Source of the DNA: Histomonas meleagridis 2922-C6/04-290x
Taxonomy: Eukaryota > Protista > Parabasalia
Length of the DNA stretch: 64,000 bases
Assembly (NCBI GenBank): GCA_020184695.1
Contig: JAANOX010000002.1
Coordinates: 248,001-312,000 of the forward strand
Direction: 5' to 3'
The position numbers were made by a program, and so were the translations under genes. The first letter of the stretch is position 1, and every line of letters begins with the position of its first letter. The notes beneath the pieces were generated by a model, which saw only the letters and a program-made list of their open reading frames with translations, was not told the DNA's origin and did not search any database. Below, in pieces: positions 26,098 through 59,489 of this stretch.

Positions 26098-26633
26098 AAA
26101 AAACGTTAAAATATTAAACGTCACTTTTTATCAAGCCTCAAAAACAAGTTTGTGCGTTTTCTAAAAACTTCATTATTTTTGTATTATTTTAATTTATTTT
26201 TTCTTCTTTTGTTTATGTTGCTTCTAAATAATGGATATATCAGTTGAGCTCCTTTATGTATAAAATGATTAATTCAAATAACCAACAATTAAAATAAATG
26301 TGTACGGGAAATTAAAATTATTTATTTTTGCTGTTTATTCAATTTAAAATTTTCTAAATTAATTAGGAATTTAATTTCGATTTCTTGAAGCACATTTTCA
26401 CCTGCTTTTATATATATATATATATATTTTGTCATTTATCATCATTCATATAGTGAATTAGCAACAAACATGTCTCAATCTAAGAAGAGATCACTTCATG
26501 ACTCCGATTATCAAAGACGGAATTTGGCTTTTTGAACAATGTCAGTGAAAAATTTGAATCGCAGTGGTTTTGCCGACGAGATGTTTTTGTTTTTGTAATT
26601 TCGCCACACCAAATGTATCATTGCAATTTAAAC

Positions 26634-27494
26634 ATGGACAAGGAAAACCAATTGGCAAGTTCAAATCAATCTTGTTCTCAAATTCCAAATATTCAAAATC
26701 CTAATCAGCCTTATTCACAAATCATTCCAAACCTACAAGTCACAAAACAACTGAACCCACAGCCTCTACATCCGCAAGCTTCAAACTCACAAATTTCGTT
26801 TCCTCAAATGCTCAACAAATCTACTTCTAAAGTTTCAAACCAAAGTTTATTACCACCAACACTAATTCAGCCACTTCCACAAGTTTTAAATGTACTAACC
26901 GTATGTTATCCATTTCCGCAGATTCCAAATCAGTCAAGCCCACGGACCTCAAACTCCAAACCTCAGCAAGAACAAATCCCAGTTCAGGCAAGCCCAAGGA
27001 CTTTAAATTCCAAACCTCAACAACAACAAATCCCAAATCAGCCGCATTTACCAGATTCCAAGATAAGAATCATCGAGCAAAAACTCGGTTACACATTTCA
27101 CGACAAGCATCATCTTATCACATCTATTACCCATCGCTCTTACTCTGATAAATTTAATTATGAGAAATACGAATTCTTTGGCGACTCCATTTTGTTGCTT
27201 ATCAGCGCCGATGTCTTATGCGAATTCTTTTTGAAATTGACCAGAGGAGAATTAACATCTCTCCAAAGCAAACTTGTTTGCAACGATACAATCGGGAAAT
27301 TTATGAAGCAGCTAAACATCGGTGAGTACTTATTTACAGTGGGCGGGAAACCAAATGCTGGCTCAAAGGTGTGGGCTGACATATTCGAAGCACTCGTCGC
27401 TGCGATTTATATCGACGGAGGATACGAACGCGCAAAGGAATTTGTGACACCGTTTTTGAGGAGCGAACTTAATAACATTGCAAATAATTTGTGA
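26634..27494 (+). CDS. Stand-alone RNase III domain protein with Gln/Pro-rich N-terminus
   Basis: IEQKLGYTF...ITHRSY, the signature NYEKYEFFGDSIL and ADIFEALVAAIYIDGG. No dsRBD or PAZ domain is evident. Probable start MDKEN at 26634. Confidence 0.85.
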   Translation: MDKENQLASSNQSCSQIPNIQNPNQPYSQIIPNLQVTKQLNPQPLHPQASNSQISFPQMLNKSTSKVSNQSLLPPTLIQPLPQVLNVLTVCYPFPQIPNQSSPRTSNSKPQQEQIPVQASPRTLNSKPQQQQIPNQPHLPDSKIRIIEQKLGYTFHDKHHLITSITHRSYSDKFNYEKYEFFGDSILLLISADVLCEFFLKLTRGELTSLQSKLVCNDTIGKFMKQLNIGEYLFTVGGKPNAGSKVWADIFEALVAAIYIDGGYERAKEFVTPFLRSELNNIANNL

Positions 27495-28959: not shown

Positions 28960-31900
28960 TGAACAAATAACAAAATAAAAAATAACTAAAAGTCAAACAA
29001 AATAACAACTTAACAACACAAATAACAAAAAAATAACAGAATAATAATAACAATAACTGAATAATATGTAATATCTGAATAATAATAATATCTGAATAAT
29101 AATATCTGAATAACATTAATAATAACTGAATAATAATATGTAACAATTGAATAACATTAATATCTGAATAATATGTAATATCTGAATAATAATATCTGAA
29201 TAACATTAATATCTGAATAATATGTAATATCTGAATAATAATATCTGAATAATAATATCTGAATAATATATAATATCTGAATAATATATAATATCTGAAT
29301 AATATGTAATATCTGAATAATAATATCTGAATAATATGTAATATCTGAATAATATGTAATATCTGAATAATATATAATATCTGAATAATATATAATATCT
29401 GAATAATATATAATATCTGAATAATATATAATATCTGAATAATAATATCTGAATAATATGTAATATCTGAATAATATATAATATCTGAATAATAATATCT
29501 GAATAATATATAATATCTGAATAATAATATCTGAATAATATATAATATCTGAATAATATGTAATATCTGAATAATAATATCTGAATAACATTAATAATAA
29601 CTGAATAATAATATGTAACAACACAAATAACAAAAAAATAACAGAATAATAATAACAATAACTGAATAATATGTAATATCTGAATAATAATAATATCTGA
29701 ATAATAATATCTGAATAACATTAATAATAACTGAATAATAATATGTAACAATTGAATAACATTAATATCTGAATAATATGTAATATCTGAATAATAATAA
29801 TATCTGAATAATATGTAATATCTGAATAATATATAATATCTGAATAATATGTAATATCTGAATAATAATATCTGAATAATAATATCTGAATAACATTAAT
29901 ATCTGAATAATATGTAATATCTGAATAATATGTAATATCTGAATAATAATATCTGAATAATATATAATATCTGAATAATATATAATATCTGAATAATATG
30001 TAATATCTGAATAATATGTAATATCTGAATAATAATATCTGAATAATATATAATATCTGAATAATATATAATATCTGAATAATATATAATATCTGAATAA
30101 TATATAATATCTGAATAATAATATCTGAATAATATGTAATATCTGAATAATATATAATATCTGAATAATAATATCTGAATAATATATAATATCTGAATAA
30201 TAATATCTGAATAATATATAATATCTGAATAATATGTAATATCTGAATAATATATAATATCTGAATAATATGTAATATCTGAATAATAATATCTGAATAA
30301 TATATAATATCTGAATAATATGTAATATCTGAATAATATGTAATATCTGAATAATAATATCTGAATAATATATAATATCTGAATAATATATAATATCTGA
30401 ATAATATGTAATATCTGAATAATAATATCTGAATAATATATAATATCTGAATAATATATAATATCTGAATAATATATAATATCTGAATAATATATAATAT
30501 CTGAATAATATGTAATATCTGAATAATATGTAATATCTGAATAACATTAATATCTGAATAATAATATCTGAATAATATATAATATCTGAATAATATGTAA
30601 TATCTGAATAATATGTAATATCTGAATAATATGTAATATCTGAATAATAATATCTGAATAATATATAATATCCGAATAATATATAATATCTGAATAATAT
30701 ATAATATCTGAATAATATGTAATATCTGAATAATATGTAATATCTGAATAATATGTAATATCTGAATAATAATATCTGAATAACATTAATATCTGAATAA
30801 TAATATCTGAATAATATATAATATCTGAATAATATGTAATATCTGAATAATAATATCTGAATAATATGTAATATCTGAATAATAATATCTGAATAATATA
30901 TAATATCTGAATAATAATAATATCTGAATAATAATATCTGAATAATATATAATATCTGAATAATATATAATATCTGAATAATATGTAATATCTGAATAAT
31001 ATGTAATATCTGAATAATAATATCTGAATAACATTAATATCTGAATAATAATATCTGAATAATATATAATATCTGAATAATATATAATATCTGAATAATA
31101 ATATCTGAATAATATGTAATATCTGAATAATAATATCTGAATAATATGTAATATCTGAATAATATGTAATATCTGAATAATATGTAATATCTGAATAATA
31201 ATATCTGAATAATATATAATATCTGAATAATATGTAATATCTGAATAATATGTAATATCTGAATAATAATATCTGAATAATATATAATATCTGAATAATA
31301 ATATCTGAATAATATGTAATATCTGAATAATAATATCTGAATAATATATAATATCTGAATAATAATAATATCTGAATAATAATATCTGAATAATATATAA
31401 TATCTGAATAATATATAATATCTGAATAATATGTAATATCTGAATAATATGTAATATCTGAATAATAATATCTGAATAACATTAATATCTGAATAATAAT
31501 ATCTGAATAATATATAATATCTGAATAATAATAATATCTGAATAATAATATCTGAATAATATATAATATCCGAATAATATGTAATATCTGAATAATAATA
31601 TCTGAATAATATGTAATATCTGAATAATAATAATATCTGAATAATATGTAATATCTGAATAATATATAATATCTGAATAATATGTAATATCTGAATAATA
31701 ATATCTGAATAATAATATCTGAATAACATTAATATCTGAATAATATGTAATATCTGAATAATATGTAATATCTGAATAATATGTAATATCTGAATAATAA
31801 TATCTGAATAATATATAATATCTGAATAATATATAATATCTGAATAATATATAATATCTGAATAATATATAATATCTGAATAATAATATCTGAATAATAT

Positions 31901-34465
31901 GTAATATCTGAATAATATATAATATCTGAATAATAATATCTGAATAATATATAATATCTGAATAATAATATCTGAATAATATATAATATCTGAATAATAT
32001 GTAATATCTGAATAATATATAATATCTGAATAATATGTAATATCTGAATAATAATATCTGAATAATATATAATATCTGAATAATATGTAATATCTGAATA
32101 ATATGTAATATCTGAATAATAATATCTGAATAATATATAATATCTGAATAATATATAATATCTGAATAATATGTAATATCTGAATAATAATATCTGAATA
32201 ATATATAATATCTGAATAATATATAATATCTGAATAATATATAATATCTGAATAATATATAATATCTGAATAATATGTAATATCTGAATAATATGTAATA
32301 TCTGAATAACATTAATATCTGAATAATAATATCTGAATAATATATAATATCTGAATAATATGTAATATCTGAATAATATGTAATATCTGAATAATATGTA
32401 ATATCTGAATAATAATATCTGAATAATATATAATATCCGAATAATATATAATATCTGAATAATATATAATATCTGAATAATATGTAATATCTGAATAATA
32501 TGTAATATCTGAATAATATGTAATATCTGAATAATAATATCTGAATAACATTAATATCTGAATAATAATATCTGAATAATATATAATATCTGAATAATAT
32601 GTAATATCTGAATAATAATATCTGAATAATAATATCTGAATAACATTAATATCTGAATAATATGTAATATCTGAATAATATGTAATATCTGAATAATAAT
32701 ATCTGAATAATATATAATATCTGAATAATATATAATATCTGAATAATATATAATATCTGAATAATATGTAATATCTGAATAATATGTAATATCTGAATAA
32801 TAATATCTGAATAACATTAATATCTGAATAATAATATCTGAATAATATATAATATCTGAATAATATATAATATCTGAATAATAATATCTGAATAATATGT
32901 AATATCTGAATAATAATATCTGAATAATATATAATATCTGAATAATATGTAATATCTGAATAATATGTAATATCTGAATAATAATATCTGAATAATATAT
33001 AATATCTGAATAATATGTAATATCTGAATAATATGTAATATCTGAATAATAATATCTGAATAATATATAATATCTGAATAATAATATCTGAATAATATGT
33101 AATATCTGAATAATAATATCTGAATAATATATAATATCTGAATAATAATAATATCTGAATAATAATATCTGAATAATATATAATATCTGAATAATATATA
33201 ATATCTGAATAATATGTAATATCTGAATAATATGTAATATCTGAATAATAATATCTGAATAACATTAATATCTGAATAATAATATCTGAATAATATATAA
33301 TATCTGAATAATAATAATATCTGAATAATAATATCTGAATAATATATAATATCCGAATAATATGTAATATCTGAATAATAATATCTGAATAATATGTAAT
33401 ATCTGAATAATAATATCTGAATAATATATAATATCTGAATAATATATAATATCTGAATAATAATATCTGAATAATATATAATATCCGAATAATATGTAAT
33501 ATCTGAATAATAATATCTGAATAATATGTAATATCTGAATAATAATATCTGAATAATATATAATATCTGAATAATATATAATATCTGAATAATAATATCT
33601 GAATAATATATAATATCCGAATAATATGTAATATCTGAATAATAATATCTGAATAATATATAATATCTGAATAATATATAATATCTGAATAATATGTAAT
33701 ATCTGAATAATATGTAATATCTGAATAATAATATCTGAATAACATTAATATCTGAATAATAATATCTGAATAATATATAATATCTGAATAATATGTAATA
33801 TCTGAATAATAATATCTGAATAATATGTAATATCTGAATAATATGTAATATCTGAATAATATATAATATCTGAATAATAATAATATCTGAATAATAATAT
33901 CTGAATAATATATAATATCTGAATAATATATAATATCTGAATAATATGTAATATCTGAATAATATGTAATATCTGAATAATATGTAATATCTGAATAATA
34001 TGTAATATCTGAATAATATGTAATATCTGAATAATATGTAATATCTGAATAATAATAACTGAATAACATTAATAATATCTGAATAACATTAATATCTGAA
34101 TAACATTAATATCTGAATAATAATATCTGAATAATATGTAATATCTGAATAATATGTAATATCTGAATAATAATATCTGAATAACATTAATATCTGAATA
34201 ATAATATCTGAATAATATGTAATATCTGAATAATAATATCTGAATAACATTAATATCTGAATAATAATATCTGAATAATATGTAATATCTGAATAACATT
34301 AATAATATCTGAATAACATTAATAATAACTGAATAACATTAATAATATCTGAATAACATTAATAATAACTGAATAACATTAATAATAACTGAATAACATT
34401 AATAATAACTGAATAACATTAATAATAACTGAATAACATTAATAATAACTGAATAATAATATCTG
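28960..34465. repeat. AT-rich satellite array 1: core ATCTGAATAA in 14/17/18/20-bp variant units with higher-order repeats
   Basis: Roughly 300 units such as ATCTGAATAATAAT, ATCTGAATAATATATAAT, ATCTGAATAATATGTAAT and ATCTGAATAACATTAAT. Rare ATCCGAAT variants recur 1765 bp apart (30672/32437) and 1783 bp apart (31570/33353). Confidence 0.97.
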
Positions 34466-35604
34466 TTTAATCTCTTTAAAATTAATAAAATAACCTTCTC
34501 TTGAATATTGTAATAACAATCTTCTCTGTTATTAGAATAATCTTTTCTGTAATATTAGTATAAATAATAACCTCTTCTGTTATGTAATAATCTTCTCTTG
34601 TATACTAACAATATAATCTTCTTTGTAATATTAATGTAATAAATCTTAATTGTAATAATATTTCTCTTTGTAATAATAATGATAATATTATTCTTCTTTG
34701 TAATAATAATCTTCTTTGTAATGTAATAAATCTTCTACGTAATAATATTAATGTAATAATGTAATCTTCTTTGTAATAATAATGATAATAACCTTCTTTG
34801 TAATATTAATGTAATAATGATAATAACTTCTTTGTAATAATAACCTTCTTTGTAATATTAATGTAATAATGTAATCTTTTTTGTAATAATAATGATAATA
34901 ACTTCTTTGTAATAATAATGTGATAATGTAATCTTCTTTGTAATAATAATGATAATAACTTCTTTGTAATAATAATGTGATAATGTAATCTTTTTTGTAA
35001 TAATAATGATAATAACTTCTTTGTAATAATAATAATATTAATGTAATAATGTAATCTTCTTTGTAATAATAATCTTCTTTGTAATATTAATGTAATAATG
35101 ATAATAATCTTCTTTGTAATAATAATGATAATAACTTCTTTGTAATAATAATAATATTAATGTAATAATATAAACTTCTTTGTAATAATAATGATAATAA
35201 CTTCTTTGTAATAATAATGATAATAACTTCTTTGTAATAATAATAATATTAATGTAATAATGTAATCTTCTTTGTAAAAATAATCTTCTTTTGAATAATA
35301 ATCTTCTTTGTAATAATAATGATAATAACTTCTTTGTAATAATAATGTAATAATGTAATCTTCTTTGTAATAATAATCTTCTTTGTAATATTAATGTAAT
35401 AATATAAACTTCTTTGTAATAATAATGATAATAACTTCTTTGTAATGATAATCTTCTTTGTAGTAATAATAATGTAAGAATATAATCTTCTTTGTAATAA
35501 TAATCTTTTTTGTAATAATAATCTTCTTTGTAATGTAATAAATCTTTTATGTAGTAATAATAATGTAATAATATAATCTTCTTTGTAATAATAATAACTT
35601 CTTT
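34466..35604. repeat. AT-rich satellite array 2: degenerate TTCTTTGTAATAAT(AAT) units
   Basis: Dozens of CTTCTTTGTAAT cores separated by variable (AAT)n/GATAAT/GTAAT tracts, directly abutting array 1. Confidence 0.9.
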
Positions 35605-42814: not shown

Positions 42815-43852
42815 ATGTTTACTAAAACTTACCAGGGGAAAAATTTATTAAATAAAGATAGTAGAGAAATTATACATCAATCCATTGAAATTAAGCTACT
42901 TTTTATGCTCGGACAAATCATATTTAATTTAACTGAAGAAAATCTCGATATATCAACTAAAGAAACGCTAAAAATATTTGATGCTAACAACCCATATTCA
43001 TCTAATTTTGTTATATGTAATATGATTTACTTTTTTTCACGAAAAAATTTTGATGGTATTTGTATAAAATATTCAGAAACAATTCAAGCAAAGGAAGAAA
43101 CAAAAGAAAATACCTCGAAAATTATTACAATATTTTGTGATTATTTAGCAAAAATTGAATCGCAAGAAACATATTATTTAATTGAGAAAATGATTAAGCG
43201 AGATTTAATAAATTCAAATATTACTAAAAAAATTTATTCTGTATAAATGTTTTAAATATTTACTTATGAATGGAGCAAATATCGAAAACACAGGTAAATA
43301 TGCAATTGCAAGTAAAAGTGAAGAAATTATTCATTTATGTGAACAAAATCATTCATCATTTGATGGCGCATATGAAACAGCAATTAAATTCCATAAAAGG
43401 AAGAGGAATCTATATGTGTTATTTTGGTTTTATTTCAATGATTTAATACTTAAATATAATATTTGGGGAAAGTTTGATTTATTTTATACAGCACTTATGT
43501 TAGCATCAACACTTGGACATAAAGAGATCGTAAAATTACTTCTTGATGAAGAAGGAATTGATATTAATGTTAAAACTGATATTTGTTTGTTTTTCAATGA
43601 TTTAATTAAACAAATATGAAATATCAAAATAGCATGTGGAAATTATTTATATCATTTGAAACTGCACTTATTTTAGCAACTCAAATGGGTTACACAGAGA
43701 TAATAAAATTATTTCAAAAAATGATATCAAAAACCAATGACTTTTTTCAAAAAGTCCTTTTTCAAAGTCATAAAATCAAAACCATTTTCATAAAAAATTA
43801 TTTGAAATATAGTTTTATAGAAATATTGTTGTTTTTAAAGAAAGTTTTATAA
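42815..43852 (+). pseudogene. Ankyrin/DUF3447-type gene B, internally deleted and frameshifted, carrying two 80-nt 17+3 cassettes
   Basis: The N-terminus is homologous to 59088..59489 (QIIFNL.EEN...STKE). A SVKCFKYLLMNG-like segment is out of frame. Ankyrin halves TAL...DINVKTD are separated by cassettes at 43408-43487 and 43581-43660. Confidence 0.7.
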
Positions 43853-50005: not shown

Positions 50006-50290
50006 AAGATATCATCAAATAAAATTTGAGATTGCAATTCCATTTTTCTCAACGAATAATCAATATTTTGATTATATCAATCTTTATCATAATGACAGCT
50101 AGTTTGGTTATTACAAGAAATATTATTTTTTATGATAGTTGATAAAATATTAATTTTTTGAAATTATAACTTCAACTTTATTTTATAAAATTTTATAAAA
50201 TTTTTATTAAGCAAATTTGATTTTATAATGCTCATATCCTAAGCAATATAGAGTTAATTTAAAAGTAAGAGCAAAATATTATTTTATGAA

Positions 50291-51514
50291 CTATTTATTA
50301 TGTAATTTTTTAATTTCCTCTATAGCTTTTCCGACGGTCATTTCAGGAGGGAAATTCCTCATGAAGTATCCCACAGCTTTATTAATTTTATTTGCATCCT
50401 CATCCGATAGCGCAGTTGGCGAATACTGAAATCGATTTGTTATAATATTTTTCCCATTTCCTGTTTTGGAAAAGCTCGACAACGTCACAGTGTTCTCGCA
50501 CATTTTGCTGTGCATATTTTGCAGGAGGCAAATGTCTTCGATTGGCTTCCGAATGTTAAACTGTCCAATGTTCGAAACCCAAACAATTGCATTTTTATCA
50601 TCAACGCAACCATAACTTGTGCTTTGTTTTAATGCATTAAAAATTTCGCCATTAAATACTTTATTGTTGAATTTGTTTCGTAATTGTTTGCCAGCTTCAT
50701 ACAGTGTCATTTTATCATCGATCTTATCAAGAACAACACTAACTGATGCAAAGTTATTACCAACAAAATCAATTTTCGATTTTTGTTGTGGGGAAACAAA
50801 AGAACGCAAATCAACGCATGTTAAACACCCAATGTTCAGTGGGCGTTTGACTCGTTGCATTGTTTCGGTTGCAATTGCAATGGAGAGCCATAATGACTCG
50901 GTGAGGCCGTTAAGCTTATTGGTAGATTTGTTATACCACTTGTGATTTTCAATGGGAAAACTATCCATGATGTTGCGTCGGTGAAGTGTGGATGGCGTTT
51001 CTGGATGTGAATAAGTTATTGGCATTCGTGATACTTTTAATTCATCTTCTTCTAAATGTGGATAAGGCTTTGCCGTTTTGAGCTCATTTGAAAAGAGTTC
51101 ACCAACTGTTAGTGGAAGCCCATTAACTTCTTGAATATTGTCATCAAGAAGAACTGGCGTAAGTTTCCTGTAAAATCCGCCATCTGTAATGCCATGGCAT
51201 GAACAAACAGAAACAAAGGTATCATTTGCTGCTATAGTTGCTAGGACTTTGGAAAAATCTGGCCAATAATGTTCACTAACATATAATGCTGCTTCATATG
51301 CTGTTTTGATTGAATTTGGAAGTGAATGAACTGTTCTACTGGTTGGGCGCGTTATAAAATTTTCTCCATCTGTTTTGAGACGAAATCCAATTATTGATTT
51401 ACGAATATTATCGATAATTTTTGGTATCACGTTTGGGTTTCCCACCCCAACTGAATACATAAGTATTTCGTGTGCAGCTATGAATCTTTTTTCGAACTGA
51501 GAAAGTTTCCTCAT
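50291..51514 (-). CDS. CoA-dependent acyltransferase / condensation-fold protein (HxxxD)
   Basis: CSCHGITDGG matches the HxxxD(G) catalytic motif; VDLR and SNIGQF segments resemble this fold. Confidence 0.55.
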   Translation of the reverse strand: MRKLSQFEKRFIAAHEILMYSVGVGNPNVIPKIIDNIRKSIIGFRLKTDGENFITRPTSRTVHSLPNSIKTAYEAALYVSEHYWPDFSKVLATIAANDTFVSVCSCHGITDGGFYRKLTPVLLDDNIQEVNGLPLTVGELFSNELKTAKPYPHLEEDELKVSRMPITYSHPETPSTLHRRNIMDSFPIENHKWYNKSTNKLNGLTESLWLSIAIATETMQRVKRPLNIGCLTCVDLRSFVSPQQKSKIDFVGNNFASVSVVLDKIDDKMTLYEAGKQLRNKFNNKVFNGEIFNALKQSTSYGCVDDKNAIVWVSNIGQFNIRKPIEDICLLQNMHSKMCENTVTLSSFSKTGNGKNIITNRFQYSPTALSDEDANKINKAVGYFMRNFPPEMTVGKAIEEIKKLHNK

Positions 51515-51646
51515 TTCAAATGTCGATACATGAATTCAATGGTAAAGTATTCAATTTCATTTGACAAACAGAGTCTCTAAATTTCGACTTCACAACTGTT
51601 ATTGTAACTCAGGAAGTTGACTCAAACTTTTAATAAACTTTGGTTT

Positions 51647-53115
51647 TTACTCTTTTCCTTCACATTTTTGGATATCAGTACAAATTTCTTGATTTTTGCC
51701 TTCAAGTATTTGAATAATGTCTTCTCGTTTGTGTTCTTGTGCAATTTTAAGTGCTGTCTTATGTTATCATAATAATTTCCAAACATTATTTTGAAATACC
51801 AAATTATTATATTAAATTTTAAATGATATAATTTAATATCTTGAGCATTGATATCTATTCCTTTTTGTTCAACAAGTAATTTCACAATTTCTTTATGACC
51901 ATTTTTAGAAGCTACCATAAGAGCCGTATGAAATTATTTAAATAAAATCCAAATAATATATTGGAATTTCAATATATTAAAATAGATATTCAATAATATA
52001 TGCAAATATCTTTAACATTAATATCAATTTCTTTTTGGTCTAGAAGTAATTTAACTATATTTGTATAACCTTTTTCAGATGCATAAATTAATACCGTAAA
52101 AAATATTCTAAATTATCGCCGAATATTACTTTGAAATTTTAAATTATTGAAACATATTTTAAATAAAGCAAATTAATATCTTTAGCATTAATATCTATTC
52201 CTTCTTGTTTGAGAAGTAATCTAATCGTTTCTTCTTGTTTTCTAATAGATGCTTTCATTAGTGCCGTATTAAATAATTTATATAATTTTGAAGTAATATT
52301 ATGAAATGCAAAATCATTAGTTGAAATAACTAATAAAATGAATAAATATCCTTAGCATTAATATCAATTCCGTCATATTCTAAAAGTATTTTCGTTATTT
52401 CATTAAAGCACTGAAATGATGCCTTCATAAGTGCTGTTTCAAATAATTTATATCATTTTGAAGTAATGTTTCAAAATCCCAAATTAGGAAATTAAACACG
52501 TAATAAAACAAATAAATATTTTTAGCATTGATGTCGATTTCTTTTTGTTCAAGAAGTAGTTTAACTATTTCTGTATGACCACGTTGAGACGCCAATATAA
52601 GTGCTGTATTAAAAATCGAATATAATCTCCAAATATATTTATGAAATCATAAATTTTGTAAAGGAATATGATATAAAAGTAACAAAAATCTTTGGCATTA
52701 ATATCAGTTCCTTCTTGTTCAAGAAGTAATTTAACCATTTCAATATTACCACAAAAAGATGCAATAATAAGTGCTGTTCGGAATAATTTAAGTAATTTCC
52801 ATAATTTATTTTAGAATATCGAAAAATTAGAATAAATATAAAATATAGTAGATTAATATCTTTAGCATTAACATCAATTCCTTTCTGTTCAAGAAGAATC
52901 TTTACTAATTCAATATAGCAATGACGAGATGCCCAATGAAGAGCTGTTTCAATAAATTTTGATTAACACCAAATTCTTCTTTTTCCGTTTGAAATAATAA
53001 AATGAACTATCAAATATTACACAGGAACATATTTCTTATTGATATCTAAGATTTTGTTTTGGATTTCCCATTGAACAAATTCAGCCAATTCGTGGGTAGC
53101 CTGACTTTCGCACAT
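51647..53115 (-). CDS. Ankyrin-repeat gene A interrupted by 32 non-canonical ~17-nt elements (8 cassettes); decoded product 307 aa
   Basis: Seven full 30-codon TAL...KD blocks and a terminal partial repeat recur with an exact 170-bp period. Removing 31x17 + 1x18 nt gives a 924-nt ORF from ATG 53115 to TAA 51649-51647 with no internal stop. Confidence 0.8.
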
Positions 53116-53466
53116 TTGAAACTGGGGTTATTGAGGCATTTTTGAATTCAAAAACTGTCGCATTGAAATTTAAATTCGAAAACCGAAAATCTACCTCTCA
53201 AAATTAAAAAAAACAAGTTGTGGCATTTTAAAGTCAGTGGCACGTGTCACTTTTTCAAAATTTTTCAAGTTCGACTTTTTGTGAGCATGCTCCTGAACGT
53301 TCAGAACAAACTTCTCCAAAAATGAGATGCGAGAGAGCATTCGAAGAGTGGTCCTTTATGATGGTGCGCCAATCGATTTTTTATTCATAAAAATCCCATT
53401 CACAAAAAGTGTAACACGTGAGAATCAATAATTTGAAGAGGCCATTTTCTTAATATTTTTATTTAT

Positions 53467-55482
53467 TTACGCTAATTCTTTATATTCATTTCTGTCAGAT
53501 GAAATTACTATTAATTTCTTTTCAAGAACTATCTCTCGTGAAGATTTCCCAATTAACACTTTGTAATTTCCTGTTACTGACAAAAACTTTTTATATTTTG
53601 GATAATACAACGCGAATGACCTTTTATCCAATGACATTTCGACCATTTTCTTTTCGCCAGGTTCCAATGATATCTTTTTGAATCCCTTTAATTCCTTTAT
53701 TGGTCTGTTTAGACCTCTTCTTGGGCCTTCTATATACATTTGCGCGACTTCCTTTCCGAAACATTCGCCAACATTTTTTATTTCGAATTTCACAATTATT
53801 TTCTTATTATCAAAAGTCTTTTTCCCAACTGATAAATTTAAGTTTGAATATTCAAACGAAGTATAACTTAACCCAAAACCAAAAGGAAACAAAACGTTCA
53901 TTTTCTTCATGTCATAATATCGATAACCTATAAAAATACTTTCGTGATAAATCGTTTGATTTCGTTCACCAAAATCAAGAAATGATGGATTATCTTCCAT
54001 TCTTAATGGAAATGTTTCTGCAATTTTTCCCGATGGGTTAACTTCGCCAAATAATATCTTCGCTAATGCTTCAGAACCTGCTTGTCCACAATAATATGGA
54101 AACACAATCGATTTCGGCTTATTTACCCACGGCATTTCTACAGGAGAACCTGCATAAACAACAACTATAACATTTTCTTGATAATTACATATTGTGTTAA
54201 TAAGTTCATTTTGTTCATCACTTAATGACATTGTTTTCCGATCTTTTGATTCTCGTTCACTTTTATCTGGTACTCCAACAAATATAATTGTTACATCCGA
54301 ATTTTGAGCAGCTTCAATTGCTTCATCAAGATAATTTTCATCGTTTTCATCTCTTAATAATTTATATCCTTTAGAATATTGTATTTGTTCAATAAATTCT
54401 TCAATTGATTCATACGCAGTTTTTGGTGTAATCGAACACTTCACTCGTGAACTCCCCCATCCTTGTGCGCGAACATTTTTTGCTTCTTGTCCGATAATTG
54501 ATATTTTACTATTTCGTTTTAATGGTAATAAGTTTCCTTCGTTCTTGAGTAAGACAATACATTCTTCAGCGACTTCGCGTGAAAGTTGATGATGTGCATT
54601 TTGATCAAATGTAATATTTTTCTTTTGTGAATTCGCTTTAAGAACAAATTCTAAAACACGTTTTACACAGTTATCAACTGACTCAATTTGAAGTAAACCA
54701 TTTTTAACATCATCTATGACCATTTTAATCGAATCAATTTCGGGTTTGGGCATTTCAAGATCAAGGCCAGCGGCACAAGATTTGGATCTGTTATGAACTG
54801 CAGACCAATCAGAAACAATAAAGCCATCAAACCCAAATTCATTTTTTAAAATGTCTGTTAACATTCTTTTGTTTTCAGCAAGAAATTCCCCATTTAATGA
54901 GTTATATGAACACATTATACTCCATGGATGTGCATGTTTTACAATCATTTCAAACGCAGGTAAATAAATCTCATAAAGTGCCCTTTCATCAACAATCATA
55001 TCTCCATGCATTCGATTCCCTTCAGAATTATTACATGCATAATGTTTAACGCATGCGCCAACGCCTTGGCTTTGGAGGCCTTCAACATAAGAAATTCCGA
55101 GTTTTCCGCATAAATAAGGATCTTCAGTGAAATATTCAAATGAACGACCGCATAACGGTGATCGTTTCATGTTGATGGCTGGGCCAAGAAGTAAACTAAC
55201 ACCATAATGTTGACATTCTTCACCAAGTGCTTCACCCATTTTTCTTATTAAATCCTCATTAAAACATGCACCCAAAGCAGAAGAAGTTGGAAAACAAGTT
55301 GAAGGATATACAGTTCTGTCGTTTGCTTCACATCTGAGTCCATGAGGACCATCTGATATTTTAACAGAAGAAATTTCAAGTCTTGGAATTGGAGCTGTAT
55401 TCCAAAGATCTGAACCTACGATGAGTGTTGCTTTTTCTTCGAGTGTTAATTCTTGGAGAAGTTGTTCTATTTTGCTTTGCAT
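53467..55482 (-). CDS. Glycoside hydrolase family 3 beta-glucosidase (bacterial-type, no signal peptide)
   Basis: SDGPHGLR, GRSFEYFTEDP, KHYACN, the nucleophile motif FDGFIVSDW, GIFIGYRYY-like YHESIFIGYRYYD, FPFGFGLSYT and a C-terminal Fn3-like domain. Confidence 0.95.
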   Translation of the reverse strand: MQSKIEQLLQELTLEEKATLIVGSDLWNTAPIPRLEISSVKISDGPHGLRCEANDRTVYPSTCFPTSSALGACFNEDLIRKMGEALGEECQHYGVSLLLGPAINMKRSPLCGRSFEYFTEDPYLCGKLGISYVEGLQSQGVGACVKHYACNNSEGNRMHGDMIVDERALYEIYLPAFEMIVKHAHPWSIMCSYNSLNGEFLAENKRMLTDILKNEFGFDGFIVSDWSAVHNRSKSCAAGLDLEMPKPEIDSIKMVIDDVKNGLLQIESVDNCVKRVLEFVLKANSQKKNITFDQNAHHQLSREVAEECIVLLKNEGNLLPLKRNSKISIIGQEAKNVRAQGWGSSRVKCSITPKTAYESIEEFIEQIQYSKGYKLLRDENDENYLDEAIEAAQNSDVTIIFVGVPDKSERESKDRKTMSLSDEQNELINTICNYQENVIVVVYAGSPVEMPWVNKPKSIVFPYYCGQAGSEALAKILFGEVNPSGKIAETFPLRMEDNPSFLDFGERNQTIYHESIFIGYRYYDMKKMNVLFPFGFGLSYTSFEYSNLNLSVGKKTFDNKKIIVKFEIKNVGECFGKEVAQMYIEGPRRGLNRPIKELKGFKKISLEPGEKKMVEMSLDKRSFALYYPKYKKFLSVTGNYKVLIGKSSREIVLEKKLIVISSDRNEYKELA

Positions 55483-55909
55483 TGTGAGATGATCTCACTG
55501 AGATCAAGTTTGAAAGCAAAATTTGCCGATATCAAAATAAACCATTTAATATTTTGTTGGGCACTTTTTGTAATAGTACCTAATTTGAAATCTCAAAATA
55601 ACAATTGGTAATTATTTTAATTATATATGTCTGCACTCATTTGGGCATTTGAAAATGGTGGCGTCAAAATAAATGAATTCTTAAAGCATAATTATTTGAT
55701 TTGATCTTCGATGTTTCAATATCTTTAATTTGTTGGTATACATTTTCCATATCTTTTTCTTTGATTTTTCTGGATTCTTTTGGATAATTTATTTTTCCGA
55801 AATTGCTTAGTGCTTCTTCATTTTTCATAAATTTGTTATTGAATTCAAATTTGAATTTTTTGTAGAAGAATTATTATTATAAATAATGTTGTATTATATA
55901 AATCATCTA

Positions 55910-55982
55910 GCCTGCGTAGCATAGTGGTTATTGCGTTCGCCTTGTAAGCGAAAGGTCGGCGGTCCGACTCCGCTCGCAGGCA
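55910..55982 (+). tRNA. tRNA-Thr: tRNA-Thr(UGU)
   Basis: Acceptor stem GCCTGCG/CGCAGGC, anticodon arm TTCGC-CT-TGT-AA-GCGAA, T arm GCGG-TCCGACT-CCGC, and a downstream oligo-T terminator. Confidence 0.92.
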
Positions 55983-56247
55983 AATTTTTTTATTTTATAT
56001 AGGATCTCAGTTCGTCAAATTACTCGAACAAAAAGCAATTAATTGCTTAAATTTTAAAAATAATGAAATTTATTTTCATTATTTGTAAATTTAAACATAA
56101 CATTTCAAAATAAAATTGTTATATGCTTTAGAAACAAAAAACCTAATCATTTGTTCGATTTTGGCTTTAAAATATGCTTCACATTATAAAATAAACACAA
56201 TTCATTTCTAACTAACGAACTGAGATCCTATATAAAATAAAAAAATT

Positions 56248-56320
56248 TGCCTGCGAGCGGAGTCGGACCGCCGACCTTTCGCTTACAAGGCGAACGCAAT
56301 AACCACTATGCTACGCAGGC
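56248..56320 (-). tRNA. tRNA-Thr: tRNA-Thr(UGU), identical inverted copy
   Basis: Exact reverse complement of 55910-55982. Confidence 0.9.
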
Positions 56321-57820: not shown

Positions 57821-59489
57821 TCATTCATTCAAGTTTGTATTAACTGTTGAAAATAATATAAATAATTACCAAATATTATTTATAAACATAAAATTATTGA
57901 ATTAAATTTTGGATAAAATAAAATAATATCTTTAACAGTTATATCAATGTTTTCTTGTTCAAGAAGTAATTTAACTATTTCTGTGTTTTCATTCATAGAT
58001 GCTATATAAATTGCTGACTGAATTTTTTTAATCAAATATAAGATGATATCAAATAATTAAAAATTATTCAAATGGATATTAAAAAAAATACAAAAAAACA
58101 TTTTTAGCATTAATATCAATTCCCTTTAGTTCAAGAAGTAATTTAACTATTTCTATATAACCATTTTCAGATGCAATCATAAGTGCTGTTCCATATAAAT
58201 CAAATAATTATTAAAAATTGTTTTGAAATCCAAAATTATTAAAATAAGTACCAAATAAAACAAATTAATATTTTGAGCATTAACATCAATTCCTTTTTGT
58301 TCAAGAAGTAATTTAACTATTTCTGTATTATTATTTCCAAGATGCTTTCATAGGTGCTGTTTCAAATAATTTGAATAATTTCCAAATATTATTTTAAAAT
58401 ATAAAATTACTAAAACATAATTTAAATAACATCTCTAGAATTAACATCAATACCTTTTTGATTTAATATATATCTAACGAGTTCAATATTCTCTGATTCC
58501 GCTGAAAAAACTAAAATACCATAAGGAAGATTACAAGAATAATCTTCTTCATTTTTAGAAAGTTCATAAAAATATTTTATGAGAAATATATTTCCTGTTA
58601 TTGCCATTTCATTTAAAATATCATCATTAATTATCATCTGTCTATCTTGTAAATACCCAAGAATTTCATAGTTATGAAATATAACACATTTCTTTCCTAA
58701 AATTTCCAATTTTTTGATTTCTTCTAATTTGTTTTCATAAATATATTTAAATATATCATTTTGATGAAATTCAATTGCTGCTTCATATGCACCTTCAAAC
58801 GATGAATGATTTTGTTCACATAAATGAATGATTTCTATATTTCCACCTGCAACTGCAAATTTACCTGTATTATCTATTTTCGAACCATTAATAAGTAAAT
58901 ATTTAAAACATTTAACAGAAGAAAAAAATGCTGCATAATCAATTAATGAAACAGTTAGTTTGTCAATAAATGAATATATTTTACAATCACGTTGTTCAAT
59001 TGTTTGATTAAAATTAAAATTTGTTTGTGATGATATTTCTTGAAGTTTTTCGATTTCATCATTTTGTATAATTTTTGCAATGTCATTTTAATTAACAACT
59101 TTATTAAGTTTCGTTGCTATATTTTCCCCATTTTCTGAGTTAATTGTGTTAATTTTATGCAGAAAATAATATGATTCTTGTGTATTTGTTTTTTTAGAAT
59201 ATTTTATGAATGTATTAAATAATTTAGAATTATAACCACTATTTTCTTCATATTTTTCTATTTCTTTAATAAAATTCATACATTTTTCAAAATCATTCGT
59301 TTTATTATTTGAAACAAGTCTTGTGTATATTATTTGGCTTATAATCATGTTAAAAGATATTTGGAGATTTTTATTAAATTTACTAATTACTTCTTTTGTT
59401 GATTGGATAATGTTTTCTTTGTTTAAATTAAAAATTATCTGCGTGATTGATTTAAGCATTTCGAGTTCATTCATGGGAGATGTTGACAA
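57821..59489 (-). pseudogene. Ankyrin/DUF3447-type gene C, decayed, with four 17+3 cassettes
   Basis: The reading continues in frame past TAA 59088-59090 into LIDYAAFFSSVKCFKYLLING..AVAGGNIEIIHLCEQ. Cassettes lie at 58361-58430 (70 nt), 58190-58269 (80), 58018-58099 (82) and 57848-57927 (80). There is a +1 indel near 58340. Confidence 0.75.

Follow-up and report, generated by a model that had tools for sequence, protein, structure and literature searches.

Seventeen-nucleotide inserts in ankyrin-repeat genes of Histomonas meleagridis: a probable family of non-canonical micro-introns

Short interruptions of coding sequence in other systems

Ultra-short spliceosomal introns are known from several protists, measuring 15-16 nt in Stentor, 18-21 nt in chlorarachniophyte nucleomorphs and 23-25 nt in the type B introns of Trichomonas vaginalis (PMC12316389). 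The shortest introns of Trichomonas (23 nt) have GT...AG ends and a CTAA branch site, the branch-site motif of parabasalids being ACTAAC/CTAA (PMC12316389). The 17-nt inserts described here, which interrupt the loops of ankyrin repeats in Histomonas meleagridis, share several features with these introns: both are removed from transcripts, keep within a narrow range of lengths close to the physical minimum, have an interior rich in A/T or T, and can be lost precisely from the genome one unit at a time. However, ultra-short protist introns have not given up the GT...AG ends or the branch motif, which is CTAA in Trichomonas, whereas none of the 460 family inserts in which ends and motifs were examined had the GT..AG ends of U2-type introns, and the U2-type branch motif CTAA occurred in only six. 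Also unlike these introns, the 17-mers stand up to four in series, with 3-nt exons between them, and belong to one gene family. Literature on parabasalids yielded nothing comparable to 17-nt loop inserts.

Like the 17-mers, the nonconventional introns of euglenids and the non-GT-AG introns of the appendicularians Fritillaria and Oikopleura have no GT-AG ends and are present in large numbers in a single lineage. Euglenid nonconventional introns pair their ends into a stem, whereas the ends of our inserts (ATTT... and ...ATTT) are not complementary and form no structure. The appendicularian introns are of ordinary length, reside in all genes and derive from transposons, and neither group is known to have a fixed 17-nt length or exons of a single codon. 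Small size, a fixed cut distance and independence of GT-AG ends also characterise the bulge-helix-bulge introns of tRNAs and archaea and the IRE1-cleaved introns of HAC1/XBP1. Such endonuclease-ligase introns require defined stems and loops (IRE1 loops contain G), whereas our spacers, i.e. the 80-nt intervals formed by four inserts and four single codons, are unstructured. Spacers with their flanks folded no better than shuffled sequences (mean z +0.19, n=60), their RNAalifold consensus was devoid of any pair, and no covarying column pairs were detected in them. Neither the two 3-nt bulges and 4-bp helix of bulge-helix-bulge introns nor, in inserts with about 2.5% G, the twin stem-loops with G-containing 7-nt loops of the IRE1 type were found. 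This lack of stable or conserved structure argues against recognition of the bulge-helix-bulge, IRE1 or euglenid type.

Two further comparisons concern the codons between the inserts and the interruption of the frame itself. Like these codons, the 3-nt micro-exons of animals are single-codon exons altering a protein surface loop, but they are regulated and lie between long canonical introns, whereas the codons considered here lie between 17-nt inserts, with no alternative use seen in contigs. Ciliate IESs and the byps of Magnusiomyces mitochondria are, like the 17-mers, short A/T-rich coding interruptions, and the frame is open only if they are disregarded. IESs leave the DNA, whereas the 17-mers stay in contigs of a DNA run, and interrupted cassettes prevail in the assembly (3,349 against two), contrary to DNA elimination of the ciliate type. 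Byps stay in the mRNA, whereas the 17-mers are absent both from the contig specific to our locus and from RNA-like contigs of its paralogues, contrary to a translational bypass or frameshift element.

The interrupted gene and its family

The ankyrin-repeat gene model of locus A occupies positions 51647-53030 on the minus strand of the window, which is the whole 64,000-nucleotide stretch of DNA analysed. It consists of an ATG, an N-terminal loop, eight blocks, seven interrupted loops, a C-terminal tail and a stop codon, all on the minus strand. The eight 90-nt blocks (T-A-L ... N-A-K-D) are open frames without interruption, their first bases (52947, 52777, 52607, 52437, 52267, 52097, 51927 and 51757) are always spaced by 170 nt, and the frame shifts by one between consecutive blocks. 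They fit the ankyrin motif T-x-L-x-x-A ... G-x-x-x-V-x-L-L ... D-x-N, and related ORFs carry ankyrin families of Pfam (Ank_2 / Ank). Each spacer between them can be read as 4 x (17 nt + 1 codon). Its four slot codons supply an ankyrin-like x-x-G-x loop, giving 34 residues per repeat, in agreement with the 33-34 residues and D-x-x-G-x loop of ankyrin repeats.

The candidate start codon ATG (53028-53030) occupies the place held by the Asp codon in later repeats and is tentative, because none of the other arrays sampled had an ATG-led first cassette. The following N-terminal 80 nt (52948-53027) fit the 4 x (17+3) grid with codons ATA, AAA, GGT and GAA, and have atypical, GC-richer inserts. Block 1 (52858-52947; 30 unbroken codons) precedes spacer 1 (52778-52857), in which the inserts at 52857-52841, 52837-52821, 52817-52801 and 52797-52781 set off the codons TAT, GAT, GGA and CGA (YDGR). 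Block 2 (52688-52777) is followed by spacer 2 (52608-52687), with four inserts of 17 nt and codons CAT, ATG, GGA and AAT (HMGN), and block 3 (52518-52607) by spacer 3 (52438-52517) with CGT, GGG, CAA and GAA (RGQE). Then come block 4 (52348-52437) and spacer 4 (52268-52347; GTT, TGC, CAA, AAT; VCQN), block 5 (52178-52267) and spacer 5 (52098-52177; AAA, AAA, GGC, TTT; KKGF), block 6 (52008-52097) and spacer 6 (51928-52007; AAT, GAA, GGA, CAT; NEGH), and block 7 (51838-51927) and spacer 7 (51758-51837; AAA, GGT, GGA, AAG; KGGK). The gene ends with block 8 and a unique C-terminal tail (51650-51757), which has only a 79% relative elsewhere in the genome, and, in the assembly frame, with the stop codon TAA (51647-51649). 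The last 288 nt of the locus, comprising the two last blocks and their spacer, are the sole 100% copy in the genome. One A within the A5 run 51693-51697 (at 51693) is missing from a contig of run X3; this would shift the frame of the tail and relocate the stop, and either the nanopore-based assembly has a homopolymer error here or the strains differ.

No stops occur among the slot codons of spacers 1-7, and slot 3 encodes Gly in five of the seven loops. All 28 inserts of these spacers are exactly 17 nt long, none ends in AG, and 21% of their positions deviate from the family consensus; their ends vary (TTG, TTC, CAT) despite the constant length. Judging from the usual ratio of indels to substitutions, several indels would be expected for about 100 substitutions in neutral A/T-rich DNA. 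As locus A accumulated about 100 substitutions in its inserts without any indel, insert length appears to be constrained. The sequence-only reading had confined all 32 elements to the D-x-x-G-x loop; for the gene of locus A this holds for the 28 exact inserts, and not in the same way for the first four (53027-52948), which fit the grid but are atypical.

Searching the H. meleagridis assembly for the interrupted cassette as GGA-N20-ACAGCACTTAT gave 3,349 matches, so that the cassette total, as a lower bound, is at least 3,349. Its insert-free counterpart, GGA-NNN-ACAGCACTTAT, matched twice, in neither case with AAA as the variable codon. In contrast to the interrupted genes, ankyrin genes of the T-P-L-H type represent other subfamilies of the genome and are unbroken. 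From 115 distinct 80-nt spacers of 30 loci, we derived the consensus 17-mers ATTTATTTGTTTTATTT for slot 1, ATTTATTTTAATAATTT for slot 2, ATTTCAAAATAATATTT for slot 3 and AATTATTTAAATTATTT for slot 4, with per-position conservation mostly of about 90-97%. Common to them are A(T/A)TT at the 5' side and ATTT at the 3' side. The exact slot-3 17-mer alone matched 2,427 genomic sites, 2,019 of them with GGA next to it. Four ENA metagenome scaffolds (L045-L048; samples SAMEA6814352/57/64/68), approximately 78% identical to H. meleagridis, share the 4 x (17+3) layout and near-identical slot sequences, their inserts often starting with GT and those of slot 1 ending in C. The slot-specific consensus proposed earlier is thus confirmed, and recurs in another organism. 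A scan of JGI metagenomes for the slot-3 17-mer followed by GGA returned 37 single matches, none with the expected downstream cassette pattern, and we treated these as chance matches.

The 17-mers, with a minor-allele fraction of 6.5%, are about as variable as synonymous sites, for which the third positions of conserved four-fold codons gave 5.2%. Their conservation consequently needs nothing beyond recent common descent of the 170-bp unit, which fits the earlier proposal that the inserts were inherited with one ancestral unit of this size. The slot codons, on the other hand, behave as codons. Among 123 distinct family units, no stops were found in 492 slot codons, whereas 41 were expected from the insert composition. 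The retained pieces are whole codons, as had been claimed. Slot 3 encodes Gly in 101 of the 123 units, the strongest mutual information falls within slot 4, and it is low between codons of different slots.

That slots 1, 2 and 4 are hypervariable surface positions was borne out by summed codon entropies (123 units) of 3.1-4.3, as opposed to 1.5 for the Gly slot. Codons 4, 5, 8, 9, 11 and 12 of the uninterrupted blocks are likewise hypervariable, up to 5.0 (4.3-5.0 for codons 5 and 8); codons 8 and 9 correspond to positions of helix 1 that are randomised in designed ankyrin proteins. The Gly slot stays conserved between similar flanks and helix codons are variable without such flanks, so the flanking inserts are neither necessary nor sufficient for variability. 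Selection on the predicted binding surface of the protein produces a pattern of this kind.

Variants of the spacer indicate that each 17-mer is a unit of its own. Spacers of 63 nt in otherwise intact arrays precisely lack the slot 1 insert, those of 60 nt lack one 20-nt module, those of 83 nt have an added codon or a two-codon exon, and spacers of 100 nt also occur. Some cassettes have broken spacer lengths (79, 81 or 82 nt) or a shortened fourth insert. A recurrent variant with the fourth insert cut to 8 nt (AATTATTT) was found on the plus strand at about 1820 and 1985 of L006 and at L014:2525, and probably arose by deletion between internal repeats of the insert.

Further cassettes are present in the window. 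Two with the 17+3 layout belong to another ankyrin gene on the plus strand (locus B, 43408-43660), and locus C (57848-58430, minus strand) is a partly decayed array of the 170-nt unit with one intact cassette, the rest having broken lengths. In locus B, one cassette (43560-43660, plus strand) has TGA on the 17+3 grid, and a split into 18 nt and 16 nt gives GAT instead, which makes it a natural test of a length ruler against end recognition. A lone cassette fragment (55590-55650, plus strand), composed of a slot-3-like 17-mer, GGT, a slot-4-like 17-mer and S-A-L-I-W-A, adjoins two inverted tRNA-Thr(TGT) genes (55910-55982, plus strand; 56248-56320, minus strand). A loose scan of the window for 17-mers in non-ankyrin hosts (at most 4 mismatches) was too noisy in DNA of 28% GC. 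Elsewhere in the window lie a 5.4-kb satellite (29043-34458) with about 319 copies of an 18-nt unit and nested periods of 32 and 50 nt, and after it a second array of about 1 kb (34582-35595) with 18/26/57-nt period; in this satellite region GC falls to 14%. A plus-strand ORF (26532-27494) encodes an RNase III domain (Pfam Ribonuclease_3). We rejected a ciliate genetic code or a giant-virus origin, because the window has long ORFs in the standard code with housekeeping domains of eukaryotes (UTP25, RRP12, Spt20), together with genes for BspA-type LRR proteins.

Removal of the inserts from transcripts

We compared positions 50200-56199 with contigs from one DNA run and three RNA-like runs. The label RNA is a guess, supported in two of the runs by contig ends coinciding with gene ends: both yielded identical contigs that share the limits of the adjacent gene (50279-51501), and coverage was patchy, as for transcripts. 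The only locus-specific contig (run X3, record 10; 232 nt, depth 3.3) matches locus A with no mismatches, block 7 included. Its positions 14-107 align on 51837-51930 and 116-232 on 51643-51760, and 8 letters separate the two parts. In place of the 80 nt of spacer 7 there are 1+8+3 = 12 letters, the middle eight known by count rather than identity, so that 68 nt are missing at locus A itself. The 13 letters upstream of 51930 comprise 4 nt of block 6 and 9 nt of slot codons. The total equals the length predicted for full removal of the inserts of spacers 6 and 7 (4+12+90+12+115, minus a 1-nt gap), and from this length, removal in spacer 6 can be inferred as well.

The 12 retained letters are contiguous with neither flank, which excludes a single contiguous removal. 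Together with the genomic variants lacking exactly one 17-mer or one 20-nt module, this upholds the earlier claim of four separate removals rather than one cut of 68-77 nt. The inserts tested are removed from transcripts as separate micro-introns; the evidence comprises this one low-depth contig at locus A plus contigs of the family, from runs whose RNA nature is guessed.

As for the family, paralogue contigs in the RNA-like runs read D-x-x-G-x-T without inserts, and loose contig ends there continue after the Asp codon with AAA TAT GGA AAA ACA GCA CTT, i.e. the four-slot consensus followed by T-A-L. Such insert-free contigs came from two separate studies, of 2013 and 2023. Loose ends of contigs from the DNA run show instead the end of a 17-mer, one codon and T-A-L, the inserts being kept, and the Illumina contigs of this run (records 1-5) span spacers with no mismatches to the assembly. 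Since insert-free copies are nearly absent from the genome (the two matches above, neither with AAA), the transcripts must arise by insert removal. For the N-terminal modules of locus A, the sole RNA-like contig (record 12 of run X3, 52908-53183) follows the genome colinearly, inserts included, starting inside block 1 and extending 150 nt upstream of the modules; it could stem from precursor RNA before splicing, from transcription running on out of the GH3 gene upstream, or from carried-over DNA. A protein word search for transcript-derived peptides of locus A gave five candidates, none of them from Histomonas RNA, and revealed the metagenome relatives. No alternative isoform was seen among the contigs, which hide rare forms, and we infer that removal of the inserts is constitutive.

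Competing explanations, excision machinery and meaning

We favour, with a probability of roughly 75%, an account in which the 17-mers are removed individually as micro-introns, their restriction to the loop is a matter of descent, loop diversity is genomic, and the inserts are constitutive passengers. According to this account, the 17-mers would form a very large family of ultra-short introns with non-canonical ends (approximately RTTT...ATTT), and individual excision of each would leave 3-nt micro-exons spelling the x-x-G-x of every repeat. One ancestral 170-bp unit, a repeat with four inserts, would have been amplified to at least 3,349 copies, and descent from it explains both the loop restriction and the slot-specific sequences. 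Selection at the protein level would keep slots 1, 2 and 4 and the classical helix surface codons variable, whereas the inserts would be passengers whose excision is needed for an open frame. An RNA-level diversifier or switch, in which micro-exon skipping or a 1-nt border shift lets one gene give rise to combinatorial loop variants or to on/off states, seems improbable to us. Skipping of a slot would indeed keep the frame, as 37 nt instead of 34 would be removed and one codon lost, three-residue loops are encoded in genomic cassettes, so shorter loops are tolerated, and one paralogue contig has just 6 letters between two blocks. But the length of the locus-specific contig corresponds to retention of all codons, and four of the 12 between-letter strings shown in the contig table have 12 letters, only one of these four replacing a single spacer. 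Loop diversity is, besides, hard-coded in thousands of genomic cassettes, which makes an RNA-level diversifier role unnecessary, and the Gly slot is conserved with identical flanks whereas helix surface codons vary equally without any.

Diversification could alternatively act on DNA, with the 17-mers as homology handles at which short-patch gene conversion would exchange individual loop codons among thousands of cassettes. Near-identical 17-nt flanks around variable codons and low mutual information among codons of different slots would suit this possibility, which we nevertheless regard as quite unlikely: conservation of the 17-mers does not exceed that of synonymous sites, the Gly slot is unshuffled, block codons 4, 5, 8 and 9 are as variable without handles, and no conversion tract has been demonstrated. 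We give hardly any credence to a decayed pseudogene or satellite with junk spacers, whose 17+3 parse would be an accident of a recently amplified unit. While the frame is shifted by every spacer, cassettes of 79, 81 or 82 nt and shortened fourth inserts exist and locus C is decayed, the RNA-like contigs lack inserts, slot codons are free of stops, exact 17-nt length persists at 21% divergence, and another species, with only 78% identity, has preserved the layout. Equally far-fetched is a library or assembly artefact, with deletions mimicked by template switching of reverse transcriptase or by mis-assembly. The sequence is A/T-rich and repetitive, and one-T microhomology is possible at many borders, yet insert-free paralogue contigs recur in the two separate studies, every removal is in frame and yields the consensus loop of ankyrin repeats, and Illumina DNA contigs reproduce the assembly through the spacers.

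As for the machinery that would excise the micro-introns, no canonical intron can be drawn, since GT and AG are nearly absent from the spacers. A single canonical or AT-AC intron per spacer was rejected: GT and AG are scarce, and AT...AC gives the wrong frame and no ankyrin loop. Of the 460 inserts, 313 start with AT and 115 with AA, and 427 end in TT. The U12-type 5' motif ATATCC and the motif CCTTAA were both absent from these inserts, AT..AC ends occurred once, and the expected combination of 5' ATATCC with branch TCCTTAAC was not found. The genome contains one canonical U6 with an ACAGAGA box, so spliceosomal machinery exists. A variant U6 or U1 was discarded as an explanation of the odd splice sites, given the one ordinary U6 and a weak second match (21 bits) also having ACAGAGA; the Rfam U1 model had no match in the genome, an absence that is uninformative.

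Minimal spliceosomal introns, for example those of Stentor, typically have a strictly peaked length distribution. The first and last nucleotides of our inserts form the pairs A...T, G...T or A...C in 446 of 460 cases (97%), and slot 1 inserts of the metagenome relative have G...C ends, all four combinations being pairable. Peaked length and pairable end nucleotides slightly incline us towards an unusual use of the spliceosome, and intron definition at near-minimal length is our working guess, at about even odds. A dedicated length-measuring endonuclease with a ligase is a serious contender, with the odds somewhat against it. More tentatively, spliceosome-independent machinery measuring 17 nt between A/U-rich ends, and dedicated to this ankyrin family, might represent a new class of nuclear mRNA introns.

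The published annotation of H. meleagridis lists 573-638 introns and leaves ankyrin unmentioned (PMC8529796). The cassettes described here imply well over 10,000 tiny introns beyond the approximately 600 annotated in the 43-Mb genome (PMC8529796). A further implication is a large ankyrin family whose predicted binding surface is hypervariable and whose genes ordinary gene finders should fragment. Standard RNA-seq aligners, by default, treat gaps below about 20 nt as deletions. Introns with no canonical end signal, a fixed length of 17 nt and single codons between them provide a natural case in which minimal requirements of intron recognition are testable. Since a gene has an open frame only once all of its approximately 30 inserts are out, machinery measuring 17 nt, if it exists, could also serve the cell as a gate on the expression of individual members of this huge family of variant surface-binding proteins. 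The finding exposes a diversifying protein family in H. meleagridis, a poultry pathogen against which there is no available treatment or prophylaxis (PMC8529796).
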